From Basidiobolus meristosporus CBS 931.73 (lineage: Eukaryota > Fungi > Basidiobolomycota), in the NCBI GenBank assembly GCA_002104905.1, contig MCFE01000713.1, positions 1 through 42,768 on the forward strand: a stretch of 42,768 nucleotides of DNA. Direction: 5' to 3'. Shown one piece after another: positions 11,661 through 41,970 of this stretch (the stretch's first letter is position 1; every line of letters begins with the position of its first letter). A program made the position numbers and the translations under genes. The notes under the pieces are model-generated. The model was not told where the DNA came from and did no database searches. It saw nothing but the letters and a program-made list of their open reading frames with translations.

Positions 11661-11661
11661 T

Positions 11662-13393: not shown

Positions 13394-13399
13394 GTTAAG

Positions 13400-16100
13400 A
13401 GGGTCGTTATTTCAAAGCTGCTGGTATAATGAGGGTCTCCAAACAGTATCCAGAGGGCTGATCTGGATTGAACCCACCTGTGGGACCAAGTTGCTTTTCA
13501 TAAGGATTCTCTAGCCACAACAATATATCATTCACCAGTAATTGGAATACTGATCTTGCTTGGTTCCATAAGTGTTCTTGGTACTTTTTCTATGGGTGTG
13601 CCTCATCATACATTGGGATTCTACCAGGCTCATGCAGTGTACTGTTGTGGGAGGAGAGAGGCTCATAATTCATGGGTGAGCCTTCTTTTTGAGAGCCATC
13701 ACCCTGCAGGCCATATTCAGAAGGCTGAGGTGAGCCTAAAGGCATCACAAACTCACCTGAATCAGTTTGGCCAAGGTGACAAGTATGGCTAAGTGCTGTT
13801 ATGAAAAGATCAACTGGCTGGCAGGATATATAGGTGCAGTAGTGAGAAATGAGTACTCAAGTATTACTTGTGTTGCAAAATACTGGCCATGTTCCTCAAA
13901 TACTTCCTCTAGAATCTGCATGTTTCATGGCTAGGCGGCTTGTTACAATGGCTGCACTGCCACTTCTCCCTTCTCCTACAGTGTTGATTTAAAGAAGTCT
14001 TTTTCATTGGGCAAACAGCGTCACACTCAACACTGTAGTACTATTATATCACTTTTTTGTCAATAATCTTGTGAATTTACAACAAACTTACCTTTGAGAC
14101 ATTGTAGCTGTAAGAATTTAAGACTCAACAATAACCCACCATTTTAGCATTATAAATAAATTTGTGGCATCACACACACATGTATATGTACCACTATTCC
14201 TCATTTGGTTGGACCCACTTCCATATATATGTTGCCAAAAATACACCAAAGTTGTCTGGTTCCCAACCAAACCTACCACAAACAACAGCAGAAAAACAGC
14301 TGGAATACAGCTTGCTCCAACATTTAGTGTAACAAGCAGGGCTACATCCAAAAAAAGGCCATGTTGATGGTGTTCCCACTGAAGGTAATAATGCAGACTG
14401 CTCATGCTCTCTGTCAAGTAGGCAATTAGGAATCTCTGTAGAGCCACAAGCTGACCATAATGCTCAGGTAGATGAGAATGTAGCAACTGTAGTACCTGTG
14501 GTGGAAGACCTGCAAGTGGCAGCCATAGCATCACCACCACCAGTATTAGTAAGTTTGCTGTTAGTATTTACCAAAGAATTGATCTGGAAACTAATTGTGG
14601 TGGCTGATAAGATAGATGCAATGGTCTAGCAAAATTAGGAACTTGTCTAGATACCAGACGCATGGACAATTTGTGTAGAGCAATCAGTATCACAGGTAGA
14701 GAACACAGTATCTATGGTGTAAAGAAGGAACACATGTAGCTCAATGTCACAGCCAAGAATTGGGCCATTTCCTGATGCAACAGTAGAAGAACACCATACA
14801 GCCCTTGGAGCACAACAGAGGTACTCAAAGATTAAACCCATAGAAGAACCTATCACAGTGTACAAGGGAGAGACTGTGATGTTTATATGCAAGACTAACA
14901 GTCAAAAGATGTAAAAGATCTGTGAAGCTGTTAAGTGCAATGATGAAGAGTAGGCTAATACTCAAGAGGCTATTAGAAGTCTAGAATTGCATCTCCTCAA
15001 GGTGGGCCTACCATAGGACCATAAGGAACTCAAGGCCAAGCAGAATGTGCTTGACCAGGTCCACAAGCATTATCTTAGATTCAAGCAAGGAAACAAATTT
15101 TGGGCCAGAATTAGTATGCTGAGAGAGTATCTCAAGAATAGCAGAAGCTGTCAAAGATAAAAGAACAAGGGTGCCATGGCTAAAAACCAGTAGCTTCCTC
15201 AGGAGCTTGTCACAGGCCAGGCTGAAAGCTCCAAACATGCTGCAAAGCAGCATTAGGTTGCCAGATGAGTGCCAGTAGGGAACAAGCAGGCAGAAACAGA
15301 TGAGAATGTGTAGCATTTATAAAGGAGACACATAGTTCAATACACAAAGCACTCAGTAGCAATAGCAGTGAAGGACCTGAGAGTGATAGAAACCTGCAGC
15401 TCTCTTAGGAGCCCATTGAAAGCAGGGCTGAAAGCTCCAAACAAATGGCAGAGAAATGTCAGGTTGCTGGGAGAGTGCTGGTTAGGGACCAGCAGCAAAA
15501 ACAAGTGCACTAGTGCAGCATTCATGAAGGAGAAAATGTAGTAAAATACAAGAAGCCTTAGTCAAAGTAGCAGGGAAGACTTGTCAGTGAGAAAGGTAAA
15601 GGTAAAGAGAAAAAGTCTACCCAAGCCAGATACAGAGAAGCATAAGAAAAATGCTGGAGTTCTCACCAACTAATGCTCTCAGCCCGGAATGGGCTGAATC
15701 CCATAATTGCCAAGAAGAATTTCCAAGAGTAAAATAGCTGTTTTCTCAAGTGTTGGAACCACAGTCAGTTGAGCTACACTCCAGTGAGGTATATGAACTT
15801 GCAGAGAAAGGCAATTTGTCTACCACTACCTCCTCATCCTCCACTGTAGACAGAACAGAGATCCCACTGATAGGCAAAGCAACAAAATCAAGAACTCAAA
15901 AGACTAGCACAGTGCCCACAGTGGAGTTTTGGAACATTTACAGGCACACCACGAGGTTGCAGCACTTCTTCAAGAGCAGTGCAGAAGAAAATGCACTTGA
16001 ACATTGCAAGGATTTACTGCAATGACTGGGAAGTGAGTTGTTAGGCCTTACAGTGCTGGCTGAAGACCAGGAAGTACAGGAACTAGTGAATGAACTCTTT
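13400..16100. mobile_element. CACTA-like relic copy 3: transposase relic on minus (~13850->13420) divergent from ORF2 relic on plus (~14030-16100)
   Basis: 13500-13850 is the reverse complement of 11040-11400. 14030-16100 is the reverse complement of ~10860->9000. ORF2 has two ~205-bp internal repeat units (~15183 and ~15388). Confidence 0.7.
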
Positions 16101-16285
16101 GTCATGGGATTTTCATTTTGTGACAACCTTTTGACAGGATCATCATGAATATTTCTCATAGGTGTATGCTGGGTATCTCCTGAGTAAAAGCCAACTTATA
16201 TGCCTTTCAATATGGAATTCACAGAGACAAGAACTGGTATGCACCTACAAGAGGGGCAAATATCTCACAGGGAGAAAGAATATAT

Positions 16286-17020
16286 TAGACTTGTTCTATT
16301 GGATAGTGCCACATTGAGCCATCAGTGGCAAATGATGCCATAGTGTGCCAGGGAGGCCAAGTGAACCTACACCTGGCCACAGAGTGTGCAGTACAGCTCT
16401 GCATCTTCATGCAAAGCAGCCCTTGTGTTTCACTCATTGTGATGGAGAAAATCCACCTTTGACCTTTTTTTTAAGGTAAATGTTGTACAGGATGTGCAAG
16501 TGCACTGAAGGATTAAAGATATGCATCTGGTACTCAATACCCATGGCACTCTGAATCTAGCTCCTGTGGCTTGTAACATGTCACAAAAATGCATGGCACT
16601 ATCTTGGTCCACTGGTACTATCTGGCACTATAAGTGCTTTGTATTGATCTTACTTTAGGGCTAATATTTAAATATAGTGCCAGATAGTACCAGTGGACCA
16701 AGATAGTGCCATGCATTTTTGTGACATGTTACAAGCCACAGGAGCTAGATTCAGAGTGCCATGGGTATTGAGTACCAGATGTATATCTTCAATCCTTTAG
16801 TGCTCTTACACATCCTGCACAATACTGATCCACAAAAAAACATCAAAAAATGGATTTTCTCCTGCATCATAGATGAAACACAGGGGCTGCTTTGCATGAA
16901 GATGCAGATCTATGTTTCCCACTCTGTGGCCAAGTATAGGCTCACTTGGCCTCTCTGGCACACTATGGCATCATTTGGCACTCATGGCTCAATGTGGCAC
17001 TATCCAATGGAACAAGTCTA
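16286..17020. repeat. Foldback inverted repeat: arms 16286-16632 and 16673-17020, 40-bp spacer
   Basis: 16524-16632 is the exact reverse complement of 16673-16781 (109 bp). Outer arms still align but are diverged. Ends read TAGAC...GTCTA. TGGCACT/AGTGCCA motifs recur in both arms. Confidence 0.95.
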
Positions 17021-17375
17021 TTGGCCAAAGTATTTTGGGGATATTCATGAGGTATTAATGGTAACAGTGGCAGTAACCTAGCATATGTTTGCAAGACACA
17101 TGTGTTACCAGCATTATAATACATATGGCAACTTTGCAAGTATCACACTGACAAGTCACAAAGTTAAGGTGATATATATATAACAATTGCAATAGGTATA
17201 TGTTTGTAAAGGTTGGTAAGCCAGAGGCCATGGTTTCTTTTGATTTGAGCTATATATAGGATACATGTGATAGTATTGGGTAATCAAATACAGAGGCATG
17301 ATTCCACTGTGGAATTCATGAAAGGCATAAGCAGGGGTAGAGAAATGAAATACCACTGGGTAAATTGGTACAGTG

Positions 17376-17760
17376 TCAATTGACAGGACTAGCTGCAGGC
17401 TGCTGCACTGCTATACTGATATCAATAGATGTATGCATAAATACTGACAGAACACCATGCAGTTTTTCACCATCTAAGGCACCCACTTGTATATGGCTGT
17501 TAGGTCTGCTCAAATAAATGTAGACCATGTCAGAGCCACCTGAATGCCATACAAACCCTGCTGGAAGATCATCAAGCGCTGTCAAGTCTACTACCATATT
17601 TGGTGGTAATTGCAGCAAAACACTGTCACAATTCCACCAAAAGATTGTAAAAAGGGTCAGGAATTCCAATCTGCTGGCATTATGGAGCCTCATTGAGGGA
17701 TCCTGACAGCTGATCCAGATTGGATCCACCTGTAGGACCAAATTAGTTTTCATAGGGTAT
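17376..17760 (-). pseudogene. CACTA transposase relic
   Basis: 17690-17760 matches 13430-13510. Minus strand encodes LFTIFWWNCDSVLLQLPPNMV, similar to the W...NLPP region of Transposase_21. Confidence 0.55.
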
Positions 17761-18229
17761 AAGGAGCATGGTGTAATGGACTCATGCTTTGTTCCATGGA
17801 TTTTGTAGATGGAAATGAGTAGATTTGTTCTATATTGTCATTGAGGCTTGAGCATGTTTTCTTGTTTTATCATCATTCTCTTTCTTGACCACAACCTTCT
17901 GTTCACTGAGCATGAAAGTATTTCCCCAATTCCTTTGGATCTTTGACAATCAGCAATATGTATGATTAATTACAACCTGCTGCCTGAAGATACACTACAA
18001 CTATATTCACAATGATCTGACTGAATAACTGCAGTGCTCTGATGGTCTTGTTTGCCCCAAACTCTCAAACAATGGTCTGGCTTGATTCCCATATGTCCGG
18101 TGGACTCATGGGGCTGTAGCACAGCTAGCAGATCTATATTTGCCTTTGAAACTAATGTATATGATCTTGCTTAAATGGTGAAGGCATATATATATAAATA
18201 TACATATCTATATATGTTTTGACTGGCAA

Positions 18230-18570
18230 AGTGTTAGCATATGCTTCTTGAGGCCACTGATTGTTTCCGATTGTTTTACTCAAACAATCAATATTGATAT
18301 GTCCAGATCTCCTGCACCAAAGCATTGGTATTTCTTTATTCAAGTTAATCACATTGGCTTCCAGATATGGTTGAATGCAAGTCAACTTGGATGGACTCTA
18401 ATCTCTGATACCTAGGGCAAGGTGGGAGCATTCTGATAGATGATCTGGCATCCAGAATTGTCAAGACCACCACTGATTCCATGTGGTGCAGCCTTACTAG
18501 CAGAGAACAGGCTCCTGACTATTTTTAGGGCATAAGGCACTTCTTTGAAGGTTGGTATATGGCACCAATC
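18230..18570 (-). pseudogene. Copia pol relic (end of protease to GAG-pre-integrase)
   Basis: Minus strand encodes KEVPYALKIVRSLFSASKAA and YLEANVINLNKEIPMLWCRRSGHINIDCL, matching copia B 11780-12030. Confidence 0.8.
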
Positions 18571-20470
18571 AGTACAATTTGGACATACCATGTTAGTTCC
18601 TGGTCCAACATTGCCAGATGAGCTTTAGTGGCTATTCAGTGGGCTACTAATGAATCACTGTCAAATCAAAGCATATGTTCCCATCTGCATGGAAAATACA
18701 CCAACAAACAGCTAGATTGCTGGTTTGGCTCAGAGAAAGAGCCATGGCCAATTTGATACATCTACCCCTATTATGCAAGAAGCTTGTGATTGGGTTTGAG
18801 TGGCTCTTGTGAAAGCCCAAGTCTGAGTGTGCAGAGATTGTATGGTAGTGCTTTGGGAGTTCTCTATGGAGTGAATGTGTGAGGAAATAAGAGGAAGCAT
18901 TAAATTGCAGCCACCACCAGGTCCAAATCTCATCAAGAGCATGATATTCCAGTCCATCATGAGTGTGCTGAGGTGGTATATGGAGGACAGCCAGGAAGAG
19001 TTGGAGATTAGCAAACATGGATGTGTTCATGGAGACATGTATGCTATGGTACTTGGAAGTTAAGCAGTCCAAATACATGGATAATAAGTTGAATAAGAAA
19101 AGGCAGAGTTTGACACCAGAAGCACCGAATTTATTCATAGGAAATCTTTGCCGAAGTATGCCAGGTGTCTGTTGGGTGCAAGCCAAATTGTATACCTTTT
19201 GGTATGGAGTTCACCCAAAGAAGGAAGGAAACGCACCCACGAGAGGGACTAGAACCCAGCCGGGCCAAAGAAATGTTGACTGAGTAGTGAGAGGCATTTT
19301 GCGGATATTCAAGAGATGATCATGCCAAAGGTGGTGGCAACGGAGCATATATAAAATGTCCCAAGAACACGTTCTGGTAACAATTCAATGCCAAACCAAG
19401 GATCTGTAATCCAACGTGGGAATACCAGCAAGAGAATCCATACTATCTATGGCCTGACCGAGGGAAGGATGGGCTATTCTGCTGCTGGGCCAACCGGGAT
19501 CCACGGTGGAACGGTTCACGTACTCATAGTAGAGGCGGTATTGAGCAGGTGGGGGATTTCAGGGTAGGCCCAATGACAATTGGCCTCTGTGCACCGCTCT
19601 CCAACACCTCGCGCTGCTCGTCCTCATTACTGGTGCGGGGAAAGTTCTATCGAAGCGCCGCTTCCCATCCAAAAGATAGTCCATTTCAGGGGATGTGATT
19701 CTCGGGTCACGAGAAGCAACTGGACTCCTACCCGATCACGAGCATGGTTCCCTCCAGTCATCATAAATCCTCACAGCCAGGTGGGCTTCCTCTAGTGCTT
19801 GGGGAATCTTTGGTGCTGCCCAATCGCCTGCCGACCGCGGAAAGGATCCTTCGGCCAGTTTAGCCAGTGAAGCCCGAATGGACCCCTGGACCAAAGCCTA
19901 TGATGCAGACAGTGATGGCGGGAATGATGAGGATGAGGATGAGGATGACGATGTGCTCCGTACATGGACACAACCACGGGACCAAGTCATTCCCCCCCCC
20001 ACCCAACTCACCTCCCTAATCCCGACGGTCAGAACACAAAAGGCAGAACCGCAGCGGGCGATTGGCGTGAAGAAATACCGGATTAGGGAGATGGGTGAAT
20101 GCGGAGTGGACCCAAATCCGGTTGGGTGGTGGTTGGGAATTACCATTACGAGCCTCGCGCTACGACACGAAGCGACTGTCCCAACGGGATTTGCCTCGAG
20201 TGTTTGGGATGATGCCATCCGGGTGAGGGAGGTGGCGAAATTCGGTGGGTGCACTAACAGGGGATCCTCACTGGGCTACGGGAGAAGGGTGTTCCATTTA
20301 TCATACATGGTTTGGCCAGCTGACCAGTAAATTCACATTACAGAGTGGAGAAGGACAACAATTACAAATATAGATATGATACAGCTCAGATCAATCTGGA
20401 CGTCCGCTTGAGAAGGGGAGGAAGGGGGGCGGGGACCTGGTGGAGGGGGTGAGGGAAGGGGGGTTCAGCA

Positions 20471-21699: not shown

Positions 21700-23010
21700 T
21701 CAGAGCCTGGCCTCAGCCAAATTCTGTTGCTCCATTTTGAGAAATCGTGGGTAGGTATACCGGAACATCAGGGAAAATATCTCGTCAAAAGCTCGGTCGA
21801 AGATGTTCAGCTGGACGTCGTTGGTCTGTATTCGACGGCGTATCTCTTTCGCCGTACCTGACTCCAGGTTCAGCTCAAATTCAGAGTCGATTGCAATGAA
21901 TGCGCTGCAGATACTATTGATCTCCAGGATCACCCAGGTGGGTAGTGTTCCCTCGTCAATGATGTCCGAGGTGTGGAGACGGAACTTCTGGATCCGTTCG
22001 AAGAACAGGACATTCTCCACACTGAAGTCGCGCTGCGAGAACCGCTTGAACACCTCGAACTGCTGCGGATCCTCTACCATCGATTCGAACGAGGACATCT
22101 TTGTGCTCTTTGTACTCGCTGCATCGGTCCCGCGCAACGCATCTATGGTGGGGAGGATGACACTGAAGACATGGCTGATCATCAGTGCCACGACGCTCCA
22201 GTGTGCGGCTGGAAATATCTTGATCACCTCTTTCAGTGCTGGAAGCGCCGCAAAGACGACGTACAAGATGAAGGCAACGACACCCAACGTGAAGTCTGCC
22301 ATCAGCTCTCGCTTGATCCCGTACGCATCGTTGACCCCTCGCAGCCAAGTTATGAAGAGTGGGCACAGGATGAACACGTAGAAGGCCGAGGTCAGGAAGA
22401 CCGGGATAAACTCCCATCCCACCAGACAGTTTCCAACGGCCATGGTTGGTGTGATCTGGAACTTGGTGGTGAATGCTTGGACAAGCAAGCTCAGGCCCAT
22501 CTGCAAGGCTAACGCACCCAGGATCAATCGGACGATGTACTTGGTGGTGAACTTCTCCCGATGCCTATAGTACCAGTTCTCATCAAGCACCATGGTCGGG
22601 GCGGTGAAGGCGGCATACTGCCTAGGGCTGAGATTGGACTTCTCCGGGCTAACGTTTATGTACTGGGTTCCCTTTGAGCCAGCGACCAGCTTCGCTTGGC
22701 TGAAATGATACAGAAAGGCAAGCCGCATGAATCGCCCTGCGACTGAGGTAAGCCATAGCGGCATCCCGATCGATGAGACCCAGATATTGAGGAAGCAAGG
22801 GAAGGTGTTGTAGGTCGGCTCTCGGCCGAGATAGAGTGTGGTGACCAACGAGTTCCCGATGGCCATAAGCACGGTGAGAGTGATGCTACGGTAGCGTATT
22901 GCTGGAGATTGGTATTGGGCGACAAACAGGAAAGTGGTGGAAAGCAGAATGAAATTCCAACCAATCGCCACTGAGTAATAGAGTTTCTGTGATAAAGTCC
23001 AGTTATCCAT
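21700..23010 (-). CDS. 7TM-RGS receptor-like protein, paralog 1 (436 aa, intronless)
   Basis: Seven hydrophobic segments (approx. aa 11-31, 43-62, 73-101, 158-180, 201-223, 236-257, 270-288). Cys at the top of TM3 (FPCF) and in ECL2 (GNCLVGWE). C-terminal RGS domain: FKRFSQRDFSVENVLFFE...ELNLE...AFDEIFSLMFRYTYPRF. Confidence 0.92.
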   Translation of the reverse strand: MDNWTLSQKLYYSVAIGWNFILLSTTFLFVAQYQSPAIRYRSITLTVLMAIGNSLVTTLYLGREPTYNTFPCFLNIWVSSIGMPLWLTSVAGRFMRLAFLYHFSQAKLVAGSKGTQYINVSPEKSNLSPRQYAAFTAPTMVLDENWYYRHREKFTTKYIVRLILGALALQMGLSLLVQAFTTKFQITPTMAVGNCLVGWEFIPVFLTSAFYVFILCPLFITWLRGVNDAYGIKRELMADFTLGVVAFILYVVFAALPALKEVIKIFPAAHWSVVALMISHVFSVILPTIDALRGTDAASTKSTKMSSFESMVEDPQQFEVFKRFSQRDFSVENVLFFERIQKFRLHTSDIIDEGTLPTWVILEINSICSAFIAIDSEFELNLESGTAKEIRRRIQTNDVQLNIFDRAFDEIFSLMFRYTYPRFLKMEQQNLAEARL

Positions 23011-24793: not shown

Positions 24794-24828
24794 ACTTGGG
24801 TGGAACCCTCCAGCAAGACACACATAAA

Positions 24829-25494
24829 ATGAAACTCAACCTCACCACCTTGTTGCTTGCTACTGCCTTAACCAGCCTCGCCAGTACTCGCGCGGAAGAC
24901 CGGAGCTGTTGGCGAAGTTGTAGTGGTGATGCCACCTGCTTAGCACAGTGTGATTCTCAGCTCCAGGGAATCGGGGATTGTAAGTCCAAGTGCAACTTCA
25001 GTAACCCCACTCAAGGGCGGGAGTGCATCCAAGCCTGCGTCCAACATCACGTACTGGAAACTCCTGGCGCCGGTGGTGCCTCTCAAACACCCACACCCAC
25101 CTCCAGTACCACGGGGACAGCCGGCCAGCTGCACCATACCGACAGCCATGGACATACCAACTGCTGGAGATCCTGTAATGGTAACAGTCAGTGCCTTGAC
25201 AAGTGCGACCAGCAAGTTGCAGGGATTGGAGAATGCAAGGCCCGTTGTGATTTCTCCAGCCCTGCAAAGGGTGTGGAATGCATCAAGAAATGCCGGGACG
25301 ACCACGTTTTCCAAAGCCCATCCGACAATGCCACTGGCGGTACTGGAGCACCAACAGAAAAGACCACCTCCTCTGGGGATCAGTCAAAATCTACCAACAG
25401 CGCAGCGGTCAGTCCGAACACTTCATCTACCCTAGCCATCTACTCCTCCCTATTAGCCGGATGCGCGCTTCTTGCCACCCTAAATGTCTTCTAA
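24829..25494 (+). CDS. Secreted, probably GPI-anchored Cys-rich protein (221 aa) with two 8-Cys modules
   Basis: Signal peptide MKLNLTTLLLATALTSLA. Two repeats of CWRSC-x5-CxxxC-x9-CKxxC-x10-CIxxC-x3-HV. Ser/Thr/Gly-rich linkers and a C-terminal hydrophobic tail (LAIYSSLLAGCALLATLNVF) after small residues (NSAA). The track start at 24796 is a TTG. Confidence 0.88.
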   Translation: MKLNLTTLLLATALTSLASTRAEDRSCWRSCSGDATCLAQCDSQLQGIGDCKSKCNFSNPTQGRECIQACVQHHVLETPGAGGASQTPTPTSSTTGTAGQLHHTDSHGHTNCWRSCNGNSQCLDKCDQQVAGIGECKARCDFSSPAKGVECIKKCRDDHVFQSPSDNATGGTGAPTEKTTSSGDQSKSTNSAAVSPNTSSTLAIYSSLLAGCALLATLNVF

Positions 25495-26511: not shown

Positions 26512-27297
26512 ATGGAAAACTGGTCGATGTCACAAAGGGTGCACTACCCATTAGCACTTTTATGGAATATTGTTCTTCTTTCCACCACTTTCCTGTTTGT
26601 TGCCCAATACCTATCTCCAGCAATACGCTACCGTAGCATCACTCTCACTGTGCTTATGGCCATCGGGAACTCGTTGGTCACCACACTCTATCTCGGCCGA
26701 GAGCCGACCTACAACACCTTCCCTTGCTTCCTCAATATCTGGGTCTCATCGATCGGGACGCCGCTGTGGCTTACCTCAGTCGCAGGGCGATTCGTGCGGC
26801 TTGCCTTTCTGTATCATTTCAGCCAAGCGAAGCTGGTCGCTGGCTCAAAGGGAGCCCAGTACATACACGTTGGCCCAGAGAAGTCCAATCTTAGCCTTGA
26901 GCAGTATGCCGAGTCGATGGTAGAGGATCCGCAGCAGTTCGAGGTGTTCAAGCGGTTCTCGCAGCGCGACTTCAGTGTGGAGAATGTCCTGTTCTTCGAA
27001 CGGATCCAGAAGTTCCGTCACCACACCTCGGACATCATCGGCGAGGGAACACTACCCACCTGGGTGATCCTGGAGATCAATAGTATCTACAGTATATTCT
27101 TTGCAGCTGACTCTGAGTTCGTATTAAACCTGGAGGCGCTGACGGTGAGAGAGATTCGGCATCGATTCCAAACCGGAGGGATCTGCCCGGACATATTTAA
27201 CAGGGCCCTCAATGAGATTCGTACGCTGATATTTCGGTACACATACGCTAGATACGTCAGGCTGGGTCAACAAGGTCTCGCCAAAACCGTACTCTAG
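26512..27297 (+). CDS. Internally deleted 7TM-RGS paralog 2 (261 aa): TM1-3 fused in frame to RGS
   Basis: Aligns with paralog 1 aa 1-133 and 309-436, with a 525-bp in-frame deletion at 26910/26911. ORF intact, RGS motifs intact. Could also be a recent pseudogene. Confidence 0.8.
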   Translation: MENWSMSQRVHYPLALLWNIVLLSTTFLFVAQYLSPAIRYRSITLTVLMAIGNSLVTTLYLGREPTYNTFPCFLNIWVSSIGTPLWLTSVAGRFVRLAFLYHFSQAKLVAGSKGAQYIHVGPEKSNLSLEQYAESMVEDPQQFEVFKRFSQRDFSVENVLFFERIQKFRHHTSDIIGEGTLPTWVILEINSIYSIFFAADSEFVLNLEALTVREIRHRFQTGGICPDIFNRALNEIRTLIFRYTYARYVRLGQQGLAKTVL

Positions 27298-30600: not shown

Positions 30601-31884
30601 ATGGAGTGGACTGTGTCTCAGAAGATATATTACCCGTTGACAATTATCTGGAACGTAATCTTGGTTGTTTCTACTCTCCTGTTCATATCTCAACGACACT
30701 CGCCGTCAATCCGATACCGCAGCATCACGCTCTCAGTGTTGATGGTCATATCCAACTCACTGGTGACAACGCTTTATTTGGGCCGTGAGCCTGATGTCGA
30801 GAGCTTTCCGTGCTTTTTAAATCTATGGATATCTTCTATCGCAATCCCGCTGTGGCTGACTTCAGTAGCAGGGAGATTCATGCGATTGGCCTTTCTTTAT
30901 CACTTCAGCCAAGCTAAACTCATGGCCGGTACGGGTAGTGCGAGATATGTTGACAAGGCTACGTTGGAAAACGGCGCTATCTCCACATACTTGGTGCTAG
31001 ATGAGAATTGGTATGCACAGCATCGCGAGAAGTTTACTACCAAGTACATCGCGAAACTCATTGGCGCGTGTGTAGCGTTCCAAACTGTGTTGACTCTAAT
31101 TATTCAGGTGTTCACTATCAAGTTCCAGATTACACCCAAGATTGCCACTGGAGGATGCCTGGTTGGCTGGGAGTTTATTCCGGTGTGGCTAACTTCGGCC
31201 TTTTACGTATTTCTGTTGTGCCCCCTCTTCATCACCTGGATTCGTGGAGTAAACGATGCATATGGCATACGACGAGAGCTGATTGCAGATTTTACACTTG
31301 GTGTACTCGCCTTCCTGCTCTATATTATATTCGCATCGTTCCCACAAATGAAAAACATACGCCTGATTTTTCCTGCTGCCCACTGGAGTGTTGTGGCTCT
31401 GGTCTTTAGTCATATCTTCAGCATCGTAGCTCCCACTATCGAGGCATTAAAAGGGGGCCCTAAGACACGAAAGTCTACAAGTCTAGCCTCGTTTGATTCT
31501 ATGGTTGAGGATCCCCGGCAGTTTGAAGTATTCAAACGATTCACTTTGAGAGATTTCAGCGTTGAGAACGTTCTCTTCTATGAGAGAGTTATTCAGCTCA
31601 AATTGAAATACCAGGATCTTCCATATAACCCGAAAGGCTCGCTGAGCACTGAGGTGGTCTATGAGCTTACTAACATCTATAACACCTTCATCACGACTGG
31701 TTCCGAATTCGAACTCAACCTTGAAGCGGCTACCATCAGCAGACTCAAGGAACGCTTCCAGAAAGAGTTGCGGCTGGACGTTTTCGACCAGGCTTTAATG
31801 GAAGTACGAAACCTGATGTATAGATATACCTATCCTAGATTTGTGAAGCTTAGCCGAAAGAATCTTGAAGAAACCATGCTGTAA
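30601..31884 (+). CDS. 7TM-RGS receptor-like protein, paralog 3 (427 aa; alternative in-frame ATG at 30529)
   Basis: Colinear with paralog 1 along its whole length (MEWTVSQK ~ MDNWTLSQK; GGCLVGWEFIPV; FKRFTLRDFSVENVLFYE; YRYTYPRF). Confidence 0.92.
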   Translation: MEWTVSQKIYYPLTIIWNVILVVSTLLFISQRHSPSIRYRSITLSVLMVISNSLVTTLYLGREPDVESFPCFLNLWISSIAIPLWLTSVAGRFMRLAFLYHFSQAKLMAGTGSARYVDKATLENGAISTYLVLDENWYAQHREKFTTKYIAKLIGACVAFQTVLTLIIQVFTIKFQITPKIATGGCLVGWEFIPVWLTSAFYVFLLCPLFITWIRGVNDAYGIRRELIADFTLGVLAFLLYIIFASFPQMKNIRLIFPAAHWSVVALVFSHIFSIVAPTIEALKGGPKTRKSTSLASFDSMVEDPRQFEVFKRFTLRDFSVENVLFYERVIQLKLKYQDLPYNPKGSLSTEVVYELTNIYNTFITTGSEFELNLEAATISRLKERFQKELRLDVFDQALMEVRNLMYRYTYPRFVKLSRKNLEETML

Positions 31885-32040
31885 GTTTGTTAAATAGCCT
31901 AAAGACTCAGCCATGGGGTGTGATGATGCTTTTATTTACTCTTCCCGTTTGATGACCAACGGTGGGCAGATATTAAATAAATATATGAAACAGGTATGTA
32001 TGCACGTATGCACATATAGCCTATCCCCAGAAGCTCCATT

Positions 32041-33395
32041 TCATTCTTTACCCTGTAAGTAAGTGAGTCGTTCATAGAATGTAGAGCAATGTGCTTGAAT
32101 TTCTGGTTTGAGAGACTCGTCAACTTTTGTTTGTTTATGCTGGACCTGGTTTGCCTGCTGTTGGTGCAAGAACTCCTGATAGTCCTTTGGCAGAGGGATG
32201 TTTAGTTTTGTGCAAATTTTGGATATGGCCTCTGGGATATTTTCAAACAGCTTGGCGAACTCGATGATCTGTACATGGCTTTTCTGATTTAGCAATCTCG
32301 TTATGTACTGAAGCTCCTCTTCGTGGGCACGATAGAAATAGCTCAGCATGATACTCCTGAATTCAGGCTTTGTAAACGGATCGTAATGGGTTGTGTGGAT
32401 GCTTATGCCTGAAAACAGCTTGACTAGGCTCGGTATGCTCTCTTCCGGCTGTCTGTAGATAAAAACAAATCTTGCGTCCGGATAGATCTCTTGAATTAGC
32501 TCGTATTCCCCCGTCCAGCACATGACCCATTTTGCCATGTATATGGACTGCGCGTTGCCCCGCTTATACAAGATTTTCTGGATCAATTTGCGATGGAAGT
32601 CGAACAACCTGGTGCGTAGGGACTTGTCTAATGAACGGAAATTCAAGAAATTGTTCATGCACTCAGGCGATGGGTATTGCTGGTATTGCGCAGCGGAGAA
32701 AGAGAAGTGGAACATAAAAGCGATGTCGTCTTCTTCCCAGTTATCCATATTCATCGGATGCATTTTGCTCACCTCGTCAAGTCCACTGGGAAGGGGATCA
32801 AAAAACGCTCGCAATCTGTTGTGGAAAAACCTCTCATCATACTGGCTGAAATACTCGGCTACGTATTGCACCCATAGAATCGGATAGGAGATTTCCCATA
32901 GAGTCAGTGCTACCACATGCTGTTCGTTGGATGCTAGGAAGTCCAATAGCTTGGTAGTGCCTGAACGAGGCTGTCCCAGAATAAACACAGGCTGGTTGAT
33001 TCTGGCCAAGTGATAGAGCGGAAACAGAATCTCGTCAATCCACCATGCAATGTTCATCGCTGGGTGCTTGATGCAGAAATTGTAGAACAACCGTGCGAGC
33101 CCACCAGTTCTACATGGGGCATGCACAGTGAGTACTTTCATCCTGTTCCAAGTAAACATGCTAAATACCTTATGTGTAAAGGAAGTGATGTGTCAGTCAA
33201 CGAATTCTTGATGTAGGTCCAAGCATATGGACCCAGCCAGAAAGGCGCAAAAAATGGAGAAATCAGATAAAAGGCAAGTAACCAGGTGGTCCAGCCAAGC
33301 CAATACACTACACTCCATAGAAGCAGCACGGGGCACACCAGAGACGTGAGTTGGTTGGCTATAAGGTCCGACCGCATGTTGGTGGATGAGCTCAT
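32041..33395 (-). CDS. PAPS-dependent sulfotransferase (Sulfotransfer_3-like, 431 aa) with N-terminal membrane segments; exons 33395-33169 and 33109-32041
   Basis: 5'-PSB loop FILGQPRSGTT and 3'-PB-like FIYRQPEESIPS. A 59-nt intron at 33168-33110 (GTATTT...TACTCAC...TAG) joins the two track ORFs in frame (HIR|TGGLAR). TATATAA lies ~45 bp upstream. Confidence 0.88.
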
Positions 33396-36026
33396 ATTAA
33401 CCAGCAGGGATGTAAGTGAGTAAGGCGAGGTTGGCTAATTATATATAGCCAAAAACTGAGAATATTGCGTAATATTGGGTAATCAAAAACGACACGTTTG
33501 CCACCTGAGAATCCGGTCAGCACATGGAGCTTCGAAATGGAGTGAAACAACCCCTAATCCATCAAGAATGAAGATCGCCGAGTTTGCTACTTCGTTAAGC
33601 GATCAGCATTGTTCTCATGGCCTCCTGCATACTTGATGGCATAGCTTTACTCATTCCTATCATTTTAAACACATCACACTGTTGTTGATGGGGCATCGTT
33701 GAGCAGATGCTTTCCTCTGGCCATGTAGCTATTTGCTTCTCAACACAATGATGCTACCACTAATTTGGCTTGATATCCGGATATACGGGGCAGCTCCCAA
33801 ATTAGTATGCCGAAATTGCCAAAGCTCGCTAATGTATTGACCTTCCAGGCCTCAATGCCGTTACAAGTCTCGATCTGGAAATGTAAATCCTTGACCAGTT
33901 GATTAGAGCGGACTCGGATGGCGTAAACTGATTGGCTTTGTTCAAGATATGGCGTTGTTTAAGCACCAATATTTGTGTACCGAGTTTAGATATAGGTTGG
34001 CGATTGTCACATTGTCCGCTTGAAGCTTGGCTATTGGCATACGAATAAGATGTGCTGAATTTTATTGTGTCATTGTCACACACAAACGTTGCTTGCACAA
34101 GCATAGAACAAGGTTTAAAGAATATCCACGTTAAATGAGTATAATTTGCTTCTATAACGTTGTTGGTATAAAATCATCGAGTTGGTTGATGAAATTAATC
34201 CGATTTGCAGTGACAATGCGTGAAATATTAGATGATGGATATTGCATGGACCTGTGGGACTCCTTTAAACCAGGCTGAACTGGGGCTAAATACTAATTCG
34301 GGTATCTCCCATTTATCCTCCTCAACTGAATTCTCTAACGTCGCTATTGTTGAGAATAGAAAGGCTAATTTGTAGAGATCGGGTCTAAAAATAAACCAAC
34401 CTTTGTGCAAACGTTGCTACTGCAGGGACGGGGATTTTGCTTGTTGCCTTGGGTGCAGTCATTCAAATGAAACCAGCATGCAAAGGGAACGTCGATCTAC
34501 TAGTTGGGACAAACAGAACAATGCCAATGACTACCAGGCACTTCATAAGCTTCAAACCTTAATAGCGTACTCCGTCCCTGATGGCCTTTCTTTTCTCTCC
34601 TTCAGATGAATTGCTTCGGACACCATTCAGACCATTTAAATTCAGTCACTTGTGATACAGTTGTACGGTTCACACGAATAGATCTATATAGGGTTACAAG
34701 GGGCTATGACACTTGTTGACTAATCTATCGATATTGGCCAAGTTACAACTTGACCAAATAAGACGCCTTTCCTATCCTGCTCCTTTGATCCCAGTTCAAA
34801 CCAATGTTACCATTGATACCAGTGTAGCAGTTGCCAGGTTTGCACACAAAACCCTTTATGACCATCATACCACAATCGCACGCCACAACGAATAGTTATA
34901 GGAAGGTGATTCCGAGTTAGAGGTCATCTTGCCATAGTGATGCATTGTGAATCCAGATATATCAGCTCTTGAAATAAGGCCATTTCAACCATTGAATGCC
35001 ATGCCAATCCCTCCCACCGCCCATTGCACCCTCATTCCTTGGAATTTTTCCGACCCGACCGTTTCACCGCTCGATCAGATTCTAGTCCACATGGTCATTC
35101 TGGGATATTTCCACTAGTGGTTTGTTTCTCACCAGCTACAACTCCATTGCGCCTCTTGAATATACGAGATGCTCCTGGGGTTATTCATCACATGGCTTCC
35201 CACAGACTCATTCTTTAATTAGGTTGCAGTCGATACATGTGCCATTGTGATTCAGCCACTATTGAGGTGGACTTGGGCCCAACTCCAAGGCTGACCGAAG
35301 GGCTGCTGCCACACGCATGCCGACCGCCCCATATAAACCAACAATCTACGACATATCGGCAATCTCATCCGACTGAACAATACAATCAGATGTATAACAT
35401 GGAAGCTCGCCCTTCCTGAGCAACCAATGCGAATACGAAGCGACAATTTTAGGTTGTATCATTTTGCTCAAGCTCCACAGGTGCCATGGCGAGATTCGTG
35501 ATTTTGCGGGTTTGTAGAGTAATATTGTGTAAGTGACACAAGAGCCTCACAGTGTCTCGTGTGTGGATAGGAAATATTGAGAATTGCTCCAATATGGGCT
35601 TCGAAAATCTGCTCTTACTAAATACCAAATTGGTGCCACCGAGTCCATGGCACAATATATATCTTCGAAATCATGAAGTTGACCTTGGATGTTTGTACAA
35701 CGATCGATTTCACGTATCACCATTCCTCCAAAATAGAGCTCTGCTCTTTGTGCAGATGGCCTTTATTCTCCTATACCTCCTACCACTGTAGCCATCATCA
35801 GGCATCAAGGGCTATGGTTGCCGAGTAGGAACACCAAAAATTTTAAGCTAGGTGTTCGTCAGGAGAGTTTCCCATCAATCTATTTCTGGATCAAGATCCG
35901 ATCAATCTTCAGGTATATAACAGACTCAGGCAGCGGCATTGCTGCCCAACTTCCCTCAGTTTCAGTCTCAGTCCACTGAACCCTTGGAAGTATCTGCTCT
36001 TGTCTTCCTTTTGTTGCACTTAACGC

Positions 36027-37865
36027 ATGTCGACCATAACTCACTGCAAGTCAAAGGTGTACATCCCCGATGAGCAGACGCCTCTTCTCCCAAAGAGCCT
36101 CATCGACGATGTGCCAAGCTATCCCAATTTCAACATCTGGTGGTCCGAATTCTGCTTGCTTGTAAAATCCTCGACCCCGGTAGTCTTGACCTATATGCTC
36201 CAGAACTCCATTCAGCTGGCCAGTATTTTCTCCTTGGGGCATTTGGTAAGCTTTCTGCTCGGCTTGATTCAAGTGTGCGTTCTATTGACCCATCTCTTGT
36301 TCTTAGGGATCAAATGGTACATACGATCTGGTTTCAAGTCAAATATTGCCGTTTTAACATCTCTATTTAGAGCTTGCGGTTGCTGCACTGGCAAATATGT
36401 TTGCTTCTGTCACTTGCTGGTCTGTCTCCATCGGCATTTCCACTGCCCTGGATACACTTGGAAGTCAAGCATATACTGGCTCCAATGATCCTCATGCATT
36501 AGGTGTATATCTTCAAAGGGCCATAGGGATTATGTCCATAATCTTCGTACCTATCTCCTTTTTGTGGTGGAATGCGGAATACCTGCTGCTCTGGTTACGC
36601 CAGGATCCTGAGCTGGCTGCCCTTGCAGGCCAGTTTTTGAGGTACCTTTTGCCAGGGGCATTCCCATTTGTATGCTTCGAATGCGTCAAGAGATATTTAC
36701 AAGCGCAAGGTAAGGCAGCGGATATTATCTGCAGTGTTGTGGTGATTCTCACTAATCAACCCTGCGCCCAGGCATTATGCATGCTAGCACATATGTTCTA
36801 CTCATCGCTAGTCCATTGAACGCACTTACCAATTATCTGTTCGTCTGGAGAGAGCCATTCAAGCTTGGCTTTATTGGTGCACCCTTGGCCACTTCCTGTA
36901 CATATGGCATCATGCTGCTACTGCTTGTACTATACGTGAAGTTTGTTGCCGGTGGAGATGCTTGGGGTGGTTGGAGCCGCAAGGCATTGCAAGGATGGTT
37001 GCCTTTCTTGAAACTTGGTAAGATTCCCACAGATATTAGATTTCCTCAGGCTGGGAATTAATCAATTTATTTCGTTCCAGCATTCCCAGGCACGATTATG
37101 ATTTGCTGCGAATGGTGGGCTTTCCAGGTATCTGGTTTGGCCGCAGCGTACTTTGGTACAGTTGCATTAGCGGCTCAGTCTATTCTCTTGACTAGCTCCT
37201 CTTTGTGCTTCACCATACCAATGGGTAAGCCGAGCTGAGTTCGTGCATCTAAATCACCCAACTAACCACAGGTATCGAAACGTTCTAGGGATCAGCATCG
37301 CCTCCAGTAATCGTGTAGGGAATTTGTTAGGGTCTGGCCGTCCAAACCATGCCAAATTAGCTGCATATTGCTCATTGATCCTGGCATTTTTGTTCGGGTC
37401 GCTCAATTCTACCGTGTTGTTCTCCCTTCGCAATGTATGGGGATATCTTTTTAACGATGATGAGAAAGTGGTTTCACTGGTGGCTCAGGTGTTACCCATT
37501 AGTGCGATGTTTCAGGTTCGCTTAATGATCAGGTGTCATTTTAATATCACATCTACTAATACAGCCTGATCTAGATCTTCGACGGACTTGGTGGGGTTAC
37601 TGGAGGTGTTTTACGCGGGCAAGGCAAGCAGGAGATTGGGGCTTATGTCAACATCGCGGCATATTACCTGATTGCACTGCCCATTGGTTACTGGCTTGTG
37701 TTTGTTCGGGACGGAAGCTTGCCAGGTATATGGTCTGCCTTCTTGATAGCACTTTTCGGTGTATCAGTTGGCCAGCTAACCTCTATACTTCGCACCAACT
37801 GGATAGAAGAGGTTCGGAAGAGCAAGGAGAGAGTCAAGATCGAGAGCGACTCCGAGACCTTGTAA
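36027..37865 (+). CDS. MATE-family efflux transporter (491 aa); exons 36027-36245, 36307-36316, 36371-36709, 36772-37017, 37081-37224, 37289-37515, 37575-37865
   Basis: Six GT-AG introns of 54-64 nt give a continuous frame. Motifs: GHLGSNELAVAALANM, STALDTLGSQAYTG, YLQAQG, CCEWWAFQ, SNRVGNLLG, QIFDGL...GVLRGQGKQ..GA.VNI.AYY. Confidence 0.92.
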
Positions 37866-40133
37866 ATCTGATCACCTGCTTCTGCTACTTACTATTATAG
37901 ATCTCTGCCAAGTTGCTTGCTCACTTTCATCTCGCCTTCTCTTCAGTACCCATCCGCTAGAGCGAATTCTGATCTAAATTCCCACACATTGCGAAACCCG
38001 GCATTGTTGGTTAAGCACCTTTAATATGCACGGTCAGGTTGTAGTCATATACCAAACTAAAGCGATCGACCCTTGCCTTCTCTCACAGTCGACAGTCATA
38101 TCTCCTAATGACCCTTACCTTACCCTATATAACTTTACTTCTGTCTACGCGAAATGTTAATATCTAGTCCCGAAGCATTCATTGCTGCCTCACTATCAAT
38201 AAATTCTCCTTCCACAGTCGGCGTGATTAAGTGGATGCATTGTTATCGTTGGATTCACCTTGGTAGGGTGGATCAGCCTAACCATATGGGGTTCTAGGAT
38301 AGCCACTGGCCTATTAGAGCATGCAGGCTTATATGAGTCTGCCTGCACAAGCAAATTGAGTCGCGCTGGATAGATACATGAGGAGGTGGAATTAGAATTC
38401 CCATTTGGGGCTCTTTTGTTTATGCAGGTGTAGTCAAGTTGTCAACCGGCACCGGCACCTATACACAGCCTGAGTCATCATTTTGATTAAATTCATTTTA
38501 CTTGTTAACCCATCGCCGTTGGAACAGCCGACATAAATGCTAGCAGGGAGAGTTGGGCATCATGTTTGGTAACATGGAGTTATGATCGTATATGGAATGT
38601 TTGCGCCCACGCTACGGAGCACGAAACATTGCTATGATGGACACGCGATTCACAAGCGCACATTCACCAGCTATTGAATCAGAATGACTTGCTGCTGGTC
38701 ATAGTCAGTACTCTGCATTGCAGAAAACCCCACGCTGAGCCTATCTTCCGCGTGTGAGCCCTGTTGACATTTTCAATTTAGAATCTTCGAGGGGTTCTAC
38801 GGTTTCGAGATAGCGGCACATTCCATATACGCCAGGCGATAGAGACAAACCACACTCTACTAGAAAAGAGGTGGCTAACCTCAGTAACCCATCTGTCCAT
38901 CATGTCATGCCAATTCCCATGCAGTCAACTTCATAGACTATCGTGGAGAATCCCTGAGCACATCCATTTGATTTGTCGATCATGTGATCTGCAGATGGAT
39001 GGGTTATTTGCTAGTAATTCACTAGTACGATAACTGGTGTCCAGCGGAATTGTTAAATGTGAAATATGCGCCACCTAGCACCGGTTTCATCCAGGTGGGA
39101 CCCAACCTTGGGTCACATGAGCGTAAGCAACTCTTTTGATATTGTGTGATTTCTGGGGCTATATCGAATACTTGGGATATCAATCATCTGACAATGGCAT
39201 GCGTCACGGTTAGTGCATCAGTGTCGATTCCACGCTTTCAAGAGTGATTGCAGTACTATTCATAGGGATTTATTCTCCTCCCGTTTGATTGATGCTGATG
39301 GGAGGGGGGACGGTGCTTTGGGTATACTAACGATGAAGTAGCATTGTTGAGCTGATACCCGTTTCATGACCCCATTTAATCCGTAATAGTTGAGTTTTGA
39401 TATTTATTTGTATATGAAGAAGTATATAGAGCGAAATATACCAATTATCTGAATAGTAATAGGAAATAGTATATTCTTTTTGCGCTACCTCTAGCCTTAC
39501 ATTATGCAAATCGTCTCCATGTTGGTTGAGACCAGTTGGAGCCCTTAGAATCCGTACGAGTTAACCATCAGTGACTTCATGCTTATTAGCCAGAGTGAAG
39601 CAGCATGAGTATATCGACAAATGTCAGTTCAAGCAGTTCCCAAATTCTTGTAAAGTGCACCAAGAAGTACCTTTCATATCGTCTACTCCTTCTAGAAATA
39701 ATAGGTTCAGCATTTATCTTAGTCATATTCTTTGGACAAAGTACTTCCTATGTTGTGCCATTATTGTTTAGTCACCTATAACTATTTCTGCAAGCCGTTC
39801 ACTGATTCTTGGAAATAGTGGAAGTAGCTAAGTTTTTCATATAACTCCAAAGGGCCTGACCTATGCTATGAAGTTTACATGGCACAATAAATAATATAGG
39901 TCAACTTAATACCAACAAAGCCGCGAAGCAATATTTTTTATGACAGTATTCCAAGTTGCTTCTAGGTACTTGATGCCGCTTTCAGTATAACAAACTACGC
40001 AGATACACTTTGATGGTGTAGGAAAGATATACTGCAGTATTGGAGAAGCAGTGTGTGTGAACTGAAATGCTCTATGACCCAAGGTGTAGTATTGGATAAC
40101 AGGTGGTGTTGTAGGGTATTTGCCTGGAGTATC

Positions 40134-40285
40134 TGTTAGGAATTTTGAAATTACACCTTAATATTGCATTAACCTACATTATAGCCTAGGAATGTTAGAA
40201 TATCTTGTCAGATTCTTTGTTGGGACTTATTTTAACTTAGCACAATGTTAGGTACCCAGAACATGAAAAATCCCAAGGTTGTCAG
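40134..40285 (+). repeat. 5' part of a related copia-type LTR, cut by the copy C LTR
   Basis: Starts TGTTAGG. Shares CACC(T)TAATATT, CTTTGTTGGG and GGTACCCAGAACATGAA blocks with the copia LTR. Confidence 0.55.
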
Positions 40286-40790
40286 TGTTGTAAGAGTCTT
40301 AGAGATATTGGAAGTCATTGGGAGAGCAAGTAGATTATATGGTTTTCACTTAATGATTTATTAAATGTAAAAGTAGTGCTAATACTTTTACATGGTCTTG
40401 GCATAACAGGCACATAGGATAGGTTAAGAAAAGTCCCAAGAACATGTGTGCAAAGTTTGGGCAGTTTGGACAACTTGTCTAATATTCATGTTCTGGATAC
40501 CTGATATTTTGGTGAAAATATTCCAAGAAAACCCCAACAGAGCATTGAGTCAGTATTCTCTAAGATTTGCAGGTAATGATCCAAGTGACTAAGTTAGTTG
40601 AATATTTAGGTGGACTTACAAATTTTGACAACACTCCCACTCAACTAAATGTTCATACTGACTAGTCCTAACTGTGACCTAAGATATTCAAATTTGTCTC
40701 TAGCAAGTAGTTTGGTAAATGTGACTGCAATCATTGCATTTGCAGGACAATAAACTAACCCTGTGAAAAATTATTGTAAAGAACCCATCA
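40286..40790 (-). mobile_element. Copia copy C, 3' end: RNase H C-terminus, polypurine tract (40644->40634) and 3' LTR (40633->40286)
   Basis: Minus strand encodes VYCPANAMIAVTFTKLLARDKFEYLRSQLGL*, then TTGAGTGGGAG|TGTTG...CAACA. LTR is colinear with copies A and B. Confidence 0.85.
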
Positions 40791-41269
40791 AAAGGCTGTC
40801 ACAAACTTAAAGTCCCATGACTAAGAGGTACTGATCCCATCAGGACACTGTCCAGAGACTGTTGAAAAATAATTGCACCCCAGATTTCACAAAGAACTTA
40901 GTCAAAATTTTTCATCACAACAATACATAAGTGGCTTTTGATTGGTTCCCTGCCAATTTGCTCACTTTCTGATCCCAGACACTCTATCACCTCCTATGTG
41001 TGTGTGAACTGATTGGTTATTGCCTCTTTTTCACCCTCCTTACTTCCTGACTTAACTGTTTCTCTTACTTTTTATGCATACAAATTGATTTATTTCCATT
41101 GAAACTTTAGTTGTACCTCAATTGCCAATTGTATTGACCTATACAAGTCCCTATACCCTACACTACCATCAAGCCCCACCCAACAATCAACAAGTAACTC
41201 CATTAAAATCCATCACTCAATAAGTATATCTGCTATAACACTCTGGTTCCACAACTTTGGTGGGAACCC

Positions 41270-41970
41270 AACGGCTTTATGCCACTGTTTGTTCACTGGT
41301 TCCCACATGTCCTGGTCTTCAGCTGGCACTGCAAGGTCTAGCTCCTCATCTGCTGTCTTTGCAATAAATCCTTGCAATATTCAAGTGCGTTTTCTTGAGT
41401 ACTGCTCTTGAAGAAGTGCTGCAACCTCTTGGTGTGCCTATTAATGTTCCAAAATTCCACTGAAGGCATTGTTATAGTCTTTCAAGTTCTTGATGTTGTA
41501 GTCTTGTCTGTCAGTGGGATCTCCACTCTGTCAACAATGGAGGGCATGGAGGCTGTTGTAGACAAATTTCCTTTTCTGCAAACTCATCTACCTTGCTGGA
41601 GTGTAGCTCAACTGGCTGTGCTTCCAGCTCTTGTGAAAGCTGCTGTTTTCTTGTTGGTAATTCTTCTTGTCTATGATAGGATTTAGTCTGTTCCAGGCTA
41701 GTGGTGTTAATTGGCAAGAACTGGAGTTTTTTTGCATGCCTCCCTGTCCCAGGCTTAGGTAGACATTTTTCCCTTGACCTTTTCCATTATCACTGCCAGG
41801 TCTCTCAATATTACTTTGTCTGAGTGCCTCCTGTAACAAACTATGTTTTCTCCTTGATAAATTCTGCTCTGACACATCTGTTTTGGCCTGCTTGTCCCTT
41901 GCTGGCAATCTTCTGGCAACCTGATGTTTCTTTCCTGCTTGTTTTGAGCTCTTGTTGTGCATCAACATTT
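41270..41970 (-). pseudogene. CACTA-associated ORF2 relic, copy 4 (continues at 42631-42768)
   Basis: Colinear with 8990-9700 and with the reverse complement of 15400-16050. 42640-42768 matches the ORF2 internal repeat unit. Confidence 0.7.

Follow-up and report, generated by a model that had tools for sequence, protein, structure and literature searches.

Traces of gene conversion and of an in-frame microhomology deletion in a shortened RGS gene of Basidiobolus meristosporus

Introduction

The occurrence of 7TM-RGS proteins in plants (AtRGS1), in many protists and in early-diverging fungi is established (PMC3718340, PMC3971589). Among ascomycetes, RGS proteins with a 7-TM domain include class VI GPCRs such as AoGprK, as well as MoRgs7 (PMC6405168, PMC10794492). 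Like these proteins, the products of the genes P1 and P2 described here and their Basidiobolus relatives join a polytopic membrane part to a C-terminal cytosolic PF00615 box. The 7TM part of the Basidiobolus proteins shows only a weak class-C (7tm_3) resemblance (E=0.005), and their likeness to AtRGS1 and MoRgs7 is one of architecture. A third gene of the same locus, here termed SHORT, differs from all of them by keeping TM1-3 only. Since its predicted product has three helices, as against seven in P1, SHORT is to be regarded as a derivative of the 7TM-RGS family and not as a member of this architecture. The comparison with the known 7TM-RGS proteins argues against presuming that a truncated anchor would be enough.

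Truncated GPCR isoforms with fewer than seven TM helices offer a second comparison; their predominant effect in vitro is the retention of the full-length partner in the ER (PMC3477067). SHORT resembles them in being a receptor fragment with the N-terminal helices. Unlike these isoforms, which originate from alternative splicing of one gene, it is a separate gene that carries a genomic deletion and has also retained the RGS effector domain. RGS proteins of the SNX13/14/25-Mdm1 type possess two N-terminal TM helices and a cytosolic RGS domain, so such a topology is viable; their domain context, PXA-RGS-PX-PXC, is ancient and conserved. SHORT shares with this type the short TM anchor and the predicted cytosolic RGS domain, but its domain context is unrelated, and it derives from a 7TM receptor and stands alone in the databases searched. 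As in interlocus conversion within inverted or tandem gene families, SHORT contains a tract with abrupt borders, near-identity at synonymous sites and a raised GC3 of the core. It deviates from the other 7TM-RGS arrays of this genome, in which homogenisation covers the complete coding sequence between ATG and stop, in that only its core has been homogenised, while the ends escaped, and in that a large deletion lies within the recipient tract.

Results and Discussion

Gene content of the locus

The window analysed, i.e. the whole stretch of 42,768 bp, is contig MCFE01000713.1 of the Basidiobolus meristosporus CBS 931.73 assembly GCA_002104905.1. Between 20 and 37 kb it carries a gene island with three intronless genes of the 7TM-RGS family, P1, SHORT and P2 (Table 1), in each of which Pfam detected an RGS box. 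P1 and SHORT are arranged head to head at a distance of 3.5 kb, with a small gene for a Cys-rich secreted-type protein in between, and their homology is limited to the coding sequence. Further genes of the island encode, in turn, a guanine deaminase of the secreted type, a sulfotransferase and a MatE transporter. Degenerate copia-type retroelements with a lower GC content make up the outer parts of the window. The relatives were all Basidiobolus proteins. A scan of the window for bacterial promoters and terminators yielded nothing; its models are bacterial and irrelevant for a fungus.

Table 1. Coordinates of the three 7TM-RGS-family genes and of the segments of SHORT within the window
Feature	Position	Strand	Evidence
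SHORT, intact ORF of 261 codons plus stop; three TM helices, linker and RGS box	26512..27297	+	ORF list, Pfam, AlphaFold2
SHORT, old 5′-end (aa 1-22), outside the conversion tract	26512..26577	+	24/66 mismatches to P1; third-position 55%
Putative conversion tract common to P1: TM1-3, half of ICL2, first half of the RGS box	26578..27088	+	18/511 mismatches
Deletion junction with CG microhomology, ICL2 (..QYA) to RGS helix 1 (ESMV..)	26910..26911	+	three-way alignment
Mismatch cluster beside the junction, 9/18 tract mismatches	26854..26913	+	codon list; binomial and Fisher tests
SHORT, old 3′-end (aa 193-261), second half of the RGS box and stop	27089..27297	+	82/209 mismatches to P1; third-position 52%
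Public NCBI/JGI gene model (P0001), 213 aa, start at Met49	26656..27297	+	protein record and contig position
P1, full-length 7TM-RGS paralogue, 436 aa, likely donor	21700..23010	-	ORF, Pfam RGS, hydropathy, AlphaFold2
525 bp present in P1 only (aa 134-308): rest of ICL2, TM4-7, linker	22086..22610	-	boundaries slide 2 bp via CG
P2, more distant third 7TM-RGS paralogue, 427 aa, outgroup	30601..31884	+	36-44% nt distance to P1 and SHORT in every segment

Evidence for gene conversion of the core

BLASTN and a repeat finder aligned positions 26512-26911 of SHORT with 23010-22611 of P1 at 90.5% identity without gaps. A second block comprised 26910-27174 and 22087-21823, which the repeat finder extended to 27272 and 21725, respectively. 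The alignment of the two genes does not contain a single small indel; its sole gap is the in-frame 525-bp segment. Counted base by base, the mismatches are distributed very unevenly, as 18 fell into the 511 nt of the core and 106 into the 275 nt of the two ends taken together. The corresponding protein identities are 160/170 in the tract, 10/22 at the 5′-end and 36/69 at the 3′-end. The contrast recurs at third codon positions, where 4.5% and 3.4% mismatches on either side of the junction are opposed to 55% and 52% in the ends, and is thus not a matter of constraint. Within the tract, dS and dN between SHORT and P1 amount to 0.060 and 0.029, respectively.

A GENECONV-like permutation of the variable sites gave P<=1e-4. 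In the maximum likelihood tree of the tract, SHORT and P1 are sisters with 100% bootstrap support, the branch of SHORT (0.024) being twice as long as that of P1 (0.012). The trees of the ends are incongruent with it: they recover a clade of SHORT, P1 and P0003 (89-92%) with an unresolved inner order and branches of 0.39-0.49 for SHORT and P1. P0003, the nearest other relative of P1, served as the reference for P1-specific states. SHORT carries 99 of 109 such states in the tract as against 28 of 82 in the ends. The distance between P1 and P0003 is even over the segments A-D (24, 23, 22 and 21.5%), including the segment absent from SHORT, and at the 5′-end P0003 is 24% distant from P1 and 39% from SHORT. 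Judging from these three sequences, P1 is the likely donor of the core of SHORT.

The ends of the two genes have reached synonymous saturation (pS 0.74) at a pN of only 0.28. When neutral drift was simulated at the observed branch length, the 91 codons stayed free of stops in approximately 5% of the cases. These two results indicate that over most of its history the recipient had been a functional gene. The GC3 of the core (0.68-0.78) exceeds that of the ends (0.46-0.62) in both P1 and SHORT, which fits repeated GC-biased exchange rather than one event; the two genes may have exchanged sequences recurrently and in both directions. We also considered that the ends of SHORT had been copied from another paralogue. 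This candidate was rejected, as the annotated protein closest to them is P0003, with a nucleotide distance of approximately 32%.

Altogether, gene conversion of the SHORT core is strongly supported by the sequence comparisons. The initial annotation of the locus had described an old paralogue that was overwritten by its inverted neighbour, with about 18 mismatches in 511 nt and abrupt switches to diverged ends, and had suggested a GENECONV or phylogenetic test. The recount reproduced its values exactly, and the test, together with the saturated but constrained ends and the recent P1-like core, corroborated the overwriting.

The deletion junction and the predicted architecture of SHORT

The segment missing from SHORT comprises 175 codons. 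The CG at the junction matches P1 on its left side (..TATGCCG/CC..) as well as on its right side (..GTTCG/AATCG..). Identity to P1 reaches 11 nt to the left of the junction and, beyond one mismatch, more than 100 nt to the right. A microhomology of 2 bp is consistent with end-joining or slippage, and equally with template switching in the course of repair synthesis. An intron or the scar of a retro-copy was rejected as the source of the gap, since in none of the three microhomology registers does the missing segment begin with GT or end with AG.

Hydropathy analysis of P1 revealed seven peaks (13-31, 43-61, 72-90, 159-177, 202-220, 241-259 and 271-289), the first three of which are the three peaks of SHORT. 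The AlphaFold2 model of P1, which is of low confidence (mean pLDDT 58), places helices at 6-31, 43-60, 72-103, 156-183, 201-223, 232-258 and 268-293, followed by a disordered linker past TM7 and by RGS helix 1 from residue 308. For SHORT, helices at 6-31, 38-60 and 67-110 and a disordered stretch at 111-129 were predicted; this three-helix part reached a pLDDT of 50-69 only, compared to 67-87 in the RGS helical bundle (130-258). Pfam assigned residues 134-250 of SHORT to the RGS family PF00615 (E=1.7e-11, 44.9 bits at a cutoff of 23.9), and its structural neighbours in the Atlas were RGS proteins. The search against solved structures gave only a weak match, to RGS10, which covered the first RGS helices. 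An S-V-E-N motif in the box aligns with S-E-E-N of RGS10, and the asparagine of L-N-L-E is retained. At three positions otherwise invariant in the 7TM-RGS family SHORT exhibits replacements (D230N, P246A and E258K). At the junction, Ser307 and the family-invariant Phe308, situated in the first turn of the RGS box, were exchanged for Tyr-Ala; the box of SHORT is therefore nearly, but not fully, complete.

Arg and Lys are enriched in loops 1 and 2. Assuming the usual N-out orientation, the models therefore suggest that the RGS box of SHORT stays cytosolic on an N-out/C-in anchor of three helices. The same arrangement, with loop 2 fused to the C-tail after removal of exactly TM4-7 (aa 134-308) by an in-frame loss at a CG microhomology, had been put forward in the initial annotation. 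The three-way alignment, the reduction from seven to three hydropathy peaks and the AlphaFold2 helices agree with it, and the topology is likewise supported; the loss of Phe308 is a refinement. A conversion combined with a microhomology deletion that preserves the topology is thus a well supported mechanism for the origin of SHORT. The case is unusually clean, since the tract borders, the likely donor, the recipient and the microhomology deletion can be read to the base in a single pair of genes; moreover, neither the membrane topology nor the domain boundary happens to be violated by the deletion.

Selection since the conversion and possible function

The preferred reading, to which we assign a probability of about 0.6, is that SHORT is a young, lineage-specific, truncated and converted copy, which is neutral or decaying under relaxed constraint. 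P1 and SHORT would accordingly be an old head-to-head pair of 7TM-RGS genes, the ends of which diverged to synonymous saturation under purifying selection in both. Recently or repeatedly, the core of SHORT would have been overwritten by P1 through ectopic gene conversion, with an original tract of approximately 1 kb. Within this tract the 525 bp were probably dropped, either by later end-joining or slippage or through template switching in the repair synthesis itself. What remained would be an intact ORF that encodes the three N-terminal TM helices in N-out orientation, followed by half of loop 2 and by a cytosolic RGS box that is almost complete. If translated, the product could act only as a receptor-independent membrane-tethered RGS protein, or as a partner holding back full-length receptors.

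The substitutions in the tract suggest a relaxed constraint. Eleven of the changes between SHORT and P1 are non-synonymous and seven synonymous (omega 0.48), the norm of the family being 0.03-0.15. In binomial tests an omega of 0.1 was rejected (P=0.001), while values of 1.0 (P=0.11) and 0.55 were not. Family-level constraint is hence rejected, but the counts are compatible with neutrality, or with one neutral lineage combined with a constrained one. An intrinsically variable loop accounts for six of the 11 non-synonymous changes, and outside this loop omega is approximately 0.3 (P=0.07 against 0.1). Polarisation of the ten amino-acid differences in the tract assigned three to SHORT and three to P1, with four being unassignable. 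Because of this even split, the relaxed constraint is not attributable to SHORT alone; the substitution pattern suggests that the pair as a whole has evolved under relaxed constraint since the conversion. All three replacements derived in SHORT, Q34L in ICL1 and M83T and M95V in TM3, affect the retained membrane part. Counts of uniquely lost invariant residues, examined as a sign of decay, did not discriminate between the genes, with five losses in the ends of SHORT and four in P1. Four additional apparent losses at residues 129-133 of SHORT turned out to be alignment artefacts.

Concerning the shortened protein itself, the sequence evidence rather favours the view that SHORT is a young copy and that its constraint is relaxed. 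A functional new gene is possible, yet we consider it rather unlikely. Such a gene would be expressed, and its N-out 3TM-RGS product would serve as a receptor-independent tethered GAP for G-alpha or as a dominant-negative trap of the 7TM-RGS paralogues. In its favour are the intact ORF, the in-frame junction placed precisely at a domain boundary, the preserved topology, an RGS box that passes Pfam and keeps the motif aligned to RGS10, and the presence of a public gene model. In addition, most eukaryote lineages possess RGS domains fused to one or more TM helices (de Mendoza 2014, PMC3971589), and GPCRs with fewer than seven TM helices are often dominant negative through ER retention (Wise 2012, PMC3477067). 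Several of these points lose weight at closer inspection. From the P1-homologous ATG to its stop codon, SHORT contains neither a stop nor a frameshift, and its start is not lost. At a divergence of approximately 2%, however, a dead ORF would survive by chance with P about 0.6-0.8, so the open frame is to be expected in 60-80% of dead copies and is weak evidence of function. Similarly, the prior for a deletion being in frame is 1/3, which makes the in-frame outcome a weak sign. Conversion from the functional neighbour P1 would itself keep the frame of SHORT clean. In the public gene model, the protein does not begin before Met49, a residue within TM2. The omega of 0.48 after the conversion, the loss of Phe308, the three replacements in the retained membrane part and the low pLDDT of the three-helix part also speak against a working protein.

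The family searches bear on the same question. HMMER was run against 1.84 billion representative proteins at a threshold of E<=0.001, which approximately 200 proteins passed. Among the best 150 of these approximately 200 matches, there was no relative consisting of TM1-3 and RGS, i.e. no homologue of the same architecture. In the same set, every other protein with its best match on TM1-3 had at least 387 aa, and the 16 relatives of less than about 290 aa that were inspected were TM5-7+RGS pieces or contained RGS only. A word-index search with 11 matches at 90% clustering did not disclose another short relative. The 261-aa product occurred on no contig or transcript contig of the collection, a result that is uninformative since P1 as well was present on one contig only.

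The initial annotation had proposed a ligand-blind membrane-tethered GAP, acting as a constitutive damper or dominant-negative partner, and with it a route to the diversification of the receptor family. In a more far-reaching form of this proposal, a deletion in a fresh conversion tract would have created a working RGS protein anchored by three TM helices and expressed beside its full-length donor, which would quench G-alpha independently of a ligand or restrain 7TM-RGS partners. In this specific form the proposal appears unlikely to us. If it were true, conversion plus microhomology deletion would have given an early-diverging fungus new architectures of a receptor family in one step, and the product, if used, would be a natural minimal membrane-tethered RGS protein derived from a receptor and a handle on the coupling of sensing and GAP activity in 7TM-RGS proteins. 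If it is unused, SHORT documents birth and death in an expanding and homogenising Basidiobolus receptor family and is a warning that function should not be deduced from an intact ORF whose neighbour is a converting donor. SHORT can be attributed to known processes in textbook quality; its architecture is possibly new.

Two properties of the deletion run counter to decay: it is in frame and lies almost exactly at the boundary of the RGS box, and the N-out/C-in topology was preserved.

Age of the deletion

The mismatches of the tract are not spread evenly. Nine of the 18 are clustered beside the junction, within 60 of the 511 nt (binomial P=7.6e-5), and three of the seven synonymous changes fall into the same cluster (Fisher P=0.03). 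The mismatch density is 15% there and approximately 2% elsewhere in the tract. This clustering may be due to a lower constraint on the loop, to error-prone synthesis in a template switch, or to later conversion that halted before the heterology. In the last case the deletion would be somewhat older than the 2% divergence elsewhere implies. For the same loop, P1 and P0003 differ by 44-50%, compared to which the 15% between SHORT and P1 characterize the deletion as young on the scale of the family. As a yardstick, dS between orthologues of B. meristosporus and B. ranarum exceeds 1.

The crowding of mismatches at the junction, synonymous ones included, would also be expected if the deletion predated the tract and conversion tracts avoid heterology. 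SHORT would then have been a 3TM-RGS gene for a long time, and conversion by P1 would have proceeded on either side of the junction or across an unrepaired 525-nt loop, so that the low divergence would date the last conversion and not the deletion. The raised core GC3 of both genes, a hint of long-term biased conversion, and the recurrence of conversion in the family are compatible with this scenario. We nevertheless regard it as quite improbable: at 15% as against 44-50% divergence, the loop near the junction must have been converted fairly recently as well, identity reaches the junction from both sides, and no orthologous 3TM-RGS protein was present among the best 150 of approximately 200 matches. 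As for the order of events under the preferred reading of a young copy, overwriting followed by deletion, a template switch and continuing conversion flanking an older deletion are indistinguishable.

It is highly improbable that the gap or a chimeric core is an artefact of collapsed or mis-joined reads of P1 and its paralogue, for although the genes are 3.5 kb apart with a core identity of 96.5% and the draft assembly contains other suspicious lesions in this family, among them an indel of 1 nt that affects the inverted copy of locus L002, the 18 private differences from P1 spread along the core do not derive from P1 reads, the clean in-frame junction at a 2-bp microhomology is typical of a real deletion, and both genes reside on one 42.8-kb contig with unique flanks.

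Related loci in Basidiobolus

An orthologous position in B. ranarum or at a second B. meristosporus locus was sought among the loci L001-L005, and no syntenic match was found. The sequence of L002 breaks off within the inverted copy, L004 and L005 share synteny with L002 and not with the window, and L001 and L003 represent a different locus. In B. meristosporus, 11 proteins of the P0003 type form one cluster; they are encoded on three contigs, are near-identical where they overlap and include three anomalous gene models. Conversion, partial copies and lesions are routine in this family, which lowers the prior that one odd copy is an innovation. L002 harbors a head-to-head pair resembling that of P1 and SHORT, with 98.5% identity over 742 nt and a spacer of 753 bp, one member of which is frameshifted by the 1-nt indel. 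L003 contains two identical 7TM-RGS genes in tandem, and also an unannotated 5′-truncated copy, which begins in loop 2, as does the junction of SHORT, and soon runs into a stop codon.

Divergence of the RGS end of P1 and GC3 of the exchanged core

In the full-length 7TM-RGS paralogue P1, the probable donor of the core, the final third of its own RGS box (aa 368-436, window 21700-21909) was unusually highly diverged. Compared with P0003, its nearest other relative, a dN of 0.23 was determined for this part, versus 0.11 elsewhere, and P1 carries the exchanges Y368C, F394I and R412F at positions that are invariant in the rest of the family. Because of the diverged RGS end and these altered residues, drift or a change of function is conceivable for P1, too. 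GC3 was compared over window 21700-23010 (P1) and 26512-27297 (SHORT, the 3TM-RGS ORF). In both genes, the exchanged core revealed values of 0.68-0.78, against 0.46-0.62 in the unexchanged ends. The raised core GC3 is possibly a footprint of GC-biased gene conversion.

Other family copies and the surroundings of the inverted genes

Another head-to-head pair of the 7TM-RGS family was found in L002:1-2782 (B. meristosporus MCFE01001066.1), its members being separated by a spacer of 753 bp. The frame of the inverted partial copy is shifted in TM4/ECL2 by a 1-nt indel, which is spanned by an "intron" in the public gene model. The truncated copy in L003 begins in intracellular loop 2 at about aa 107 and comprises TM4-7 and part of RGS, running for 255 codons up to a stop; two identical tandem genes of 438 aa lie directly downstream. 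For the B. ranarum gene model K7432_002203, the annotated 437-aa product could not be translated in a single piece from its interval.

Coordinates of family copies and neighbouring features
Feature	Location	Strand	Remarks
Retroelement ORF	window 11669-13300	-	gag, beta-barrel, pre-integrase
Small protein gene	window 24796-25494	+	between the inverted RGS genes P1 and SHORT
P0003	L002 1496-2782		partner in head-to-head pair
Partial inverted family copy	L002 1-742	reverse	98.5% identity to P0003
5'-truncated 7TM-RGS family copy	L003:8513-9487 (B. meristosporus MCFE01000221.1)		unannotated
Gene model K7432_002203	L001:5147-8462 (B. ranarum JASJQH010006932.1)		covers two complete tandem family copies
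Tandem copies inside K7432_002203	L001 5147-6460 and 7146-8462

The product of the small protein gene starts with an N-terminus resembling a signal peptide and contains two modules of ~50 aa, each with eight cysteines. It also has a region rich in Ser/Thr, and its C-end is hydrophobic and GPI-like. It did not match any Pfam family.

The gene order from P2, the more distant third paralogue, to MatE (window 30601-37600) parallels that from P0009 to MatE in B. ranarum L004, which shares RRM and DUF7492 neighbours with L002. The window and L002 thus seem to have arisen by an old segmental duplication, with differential gene loss. In window 1-19000 and 38000-42768, an LTR retroelement of the copia type is present in several degenerate copies, and the GC content of the retroelement parts is 0.38-0.42, compared to 0.47-0.53 in the gene island.
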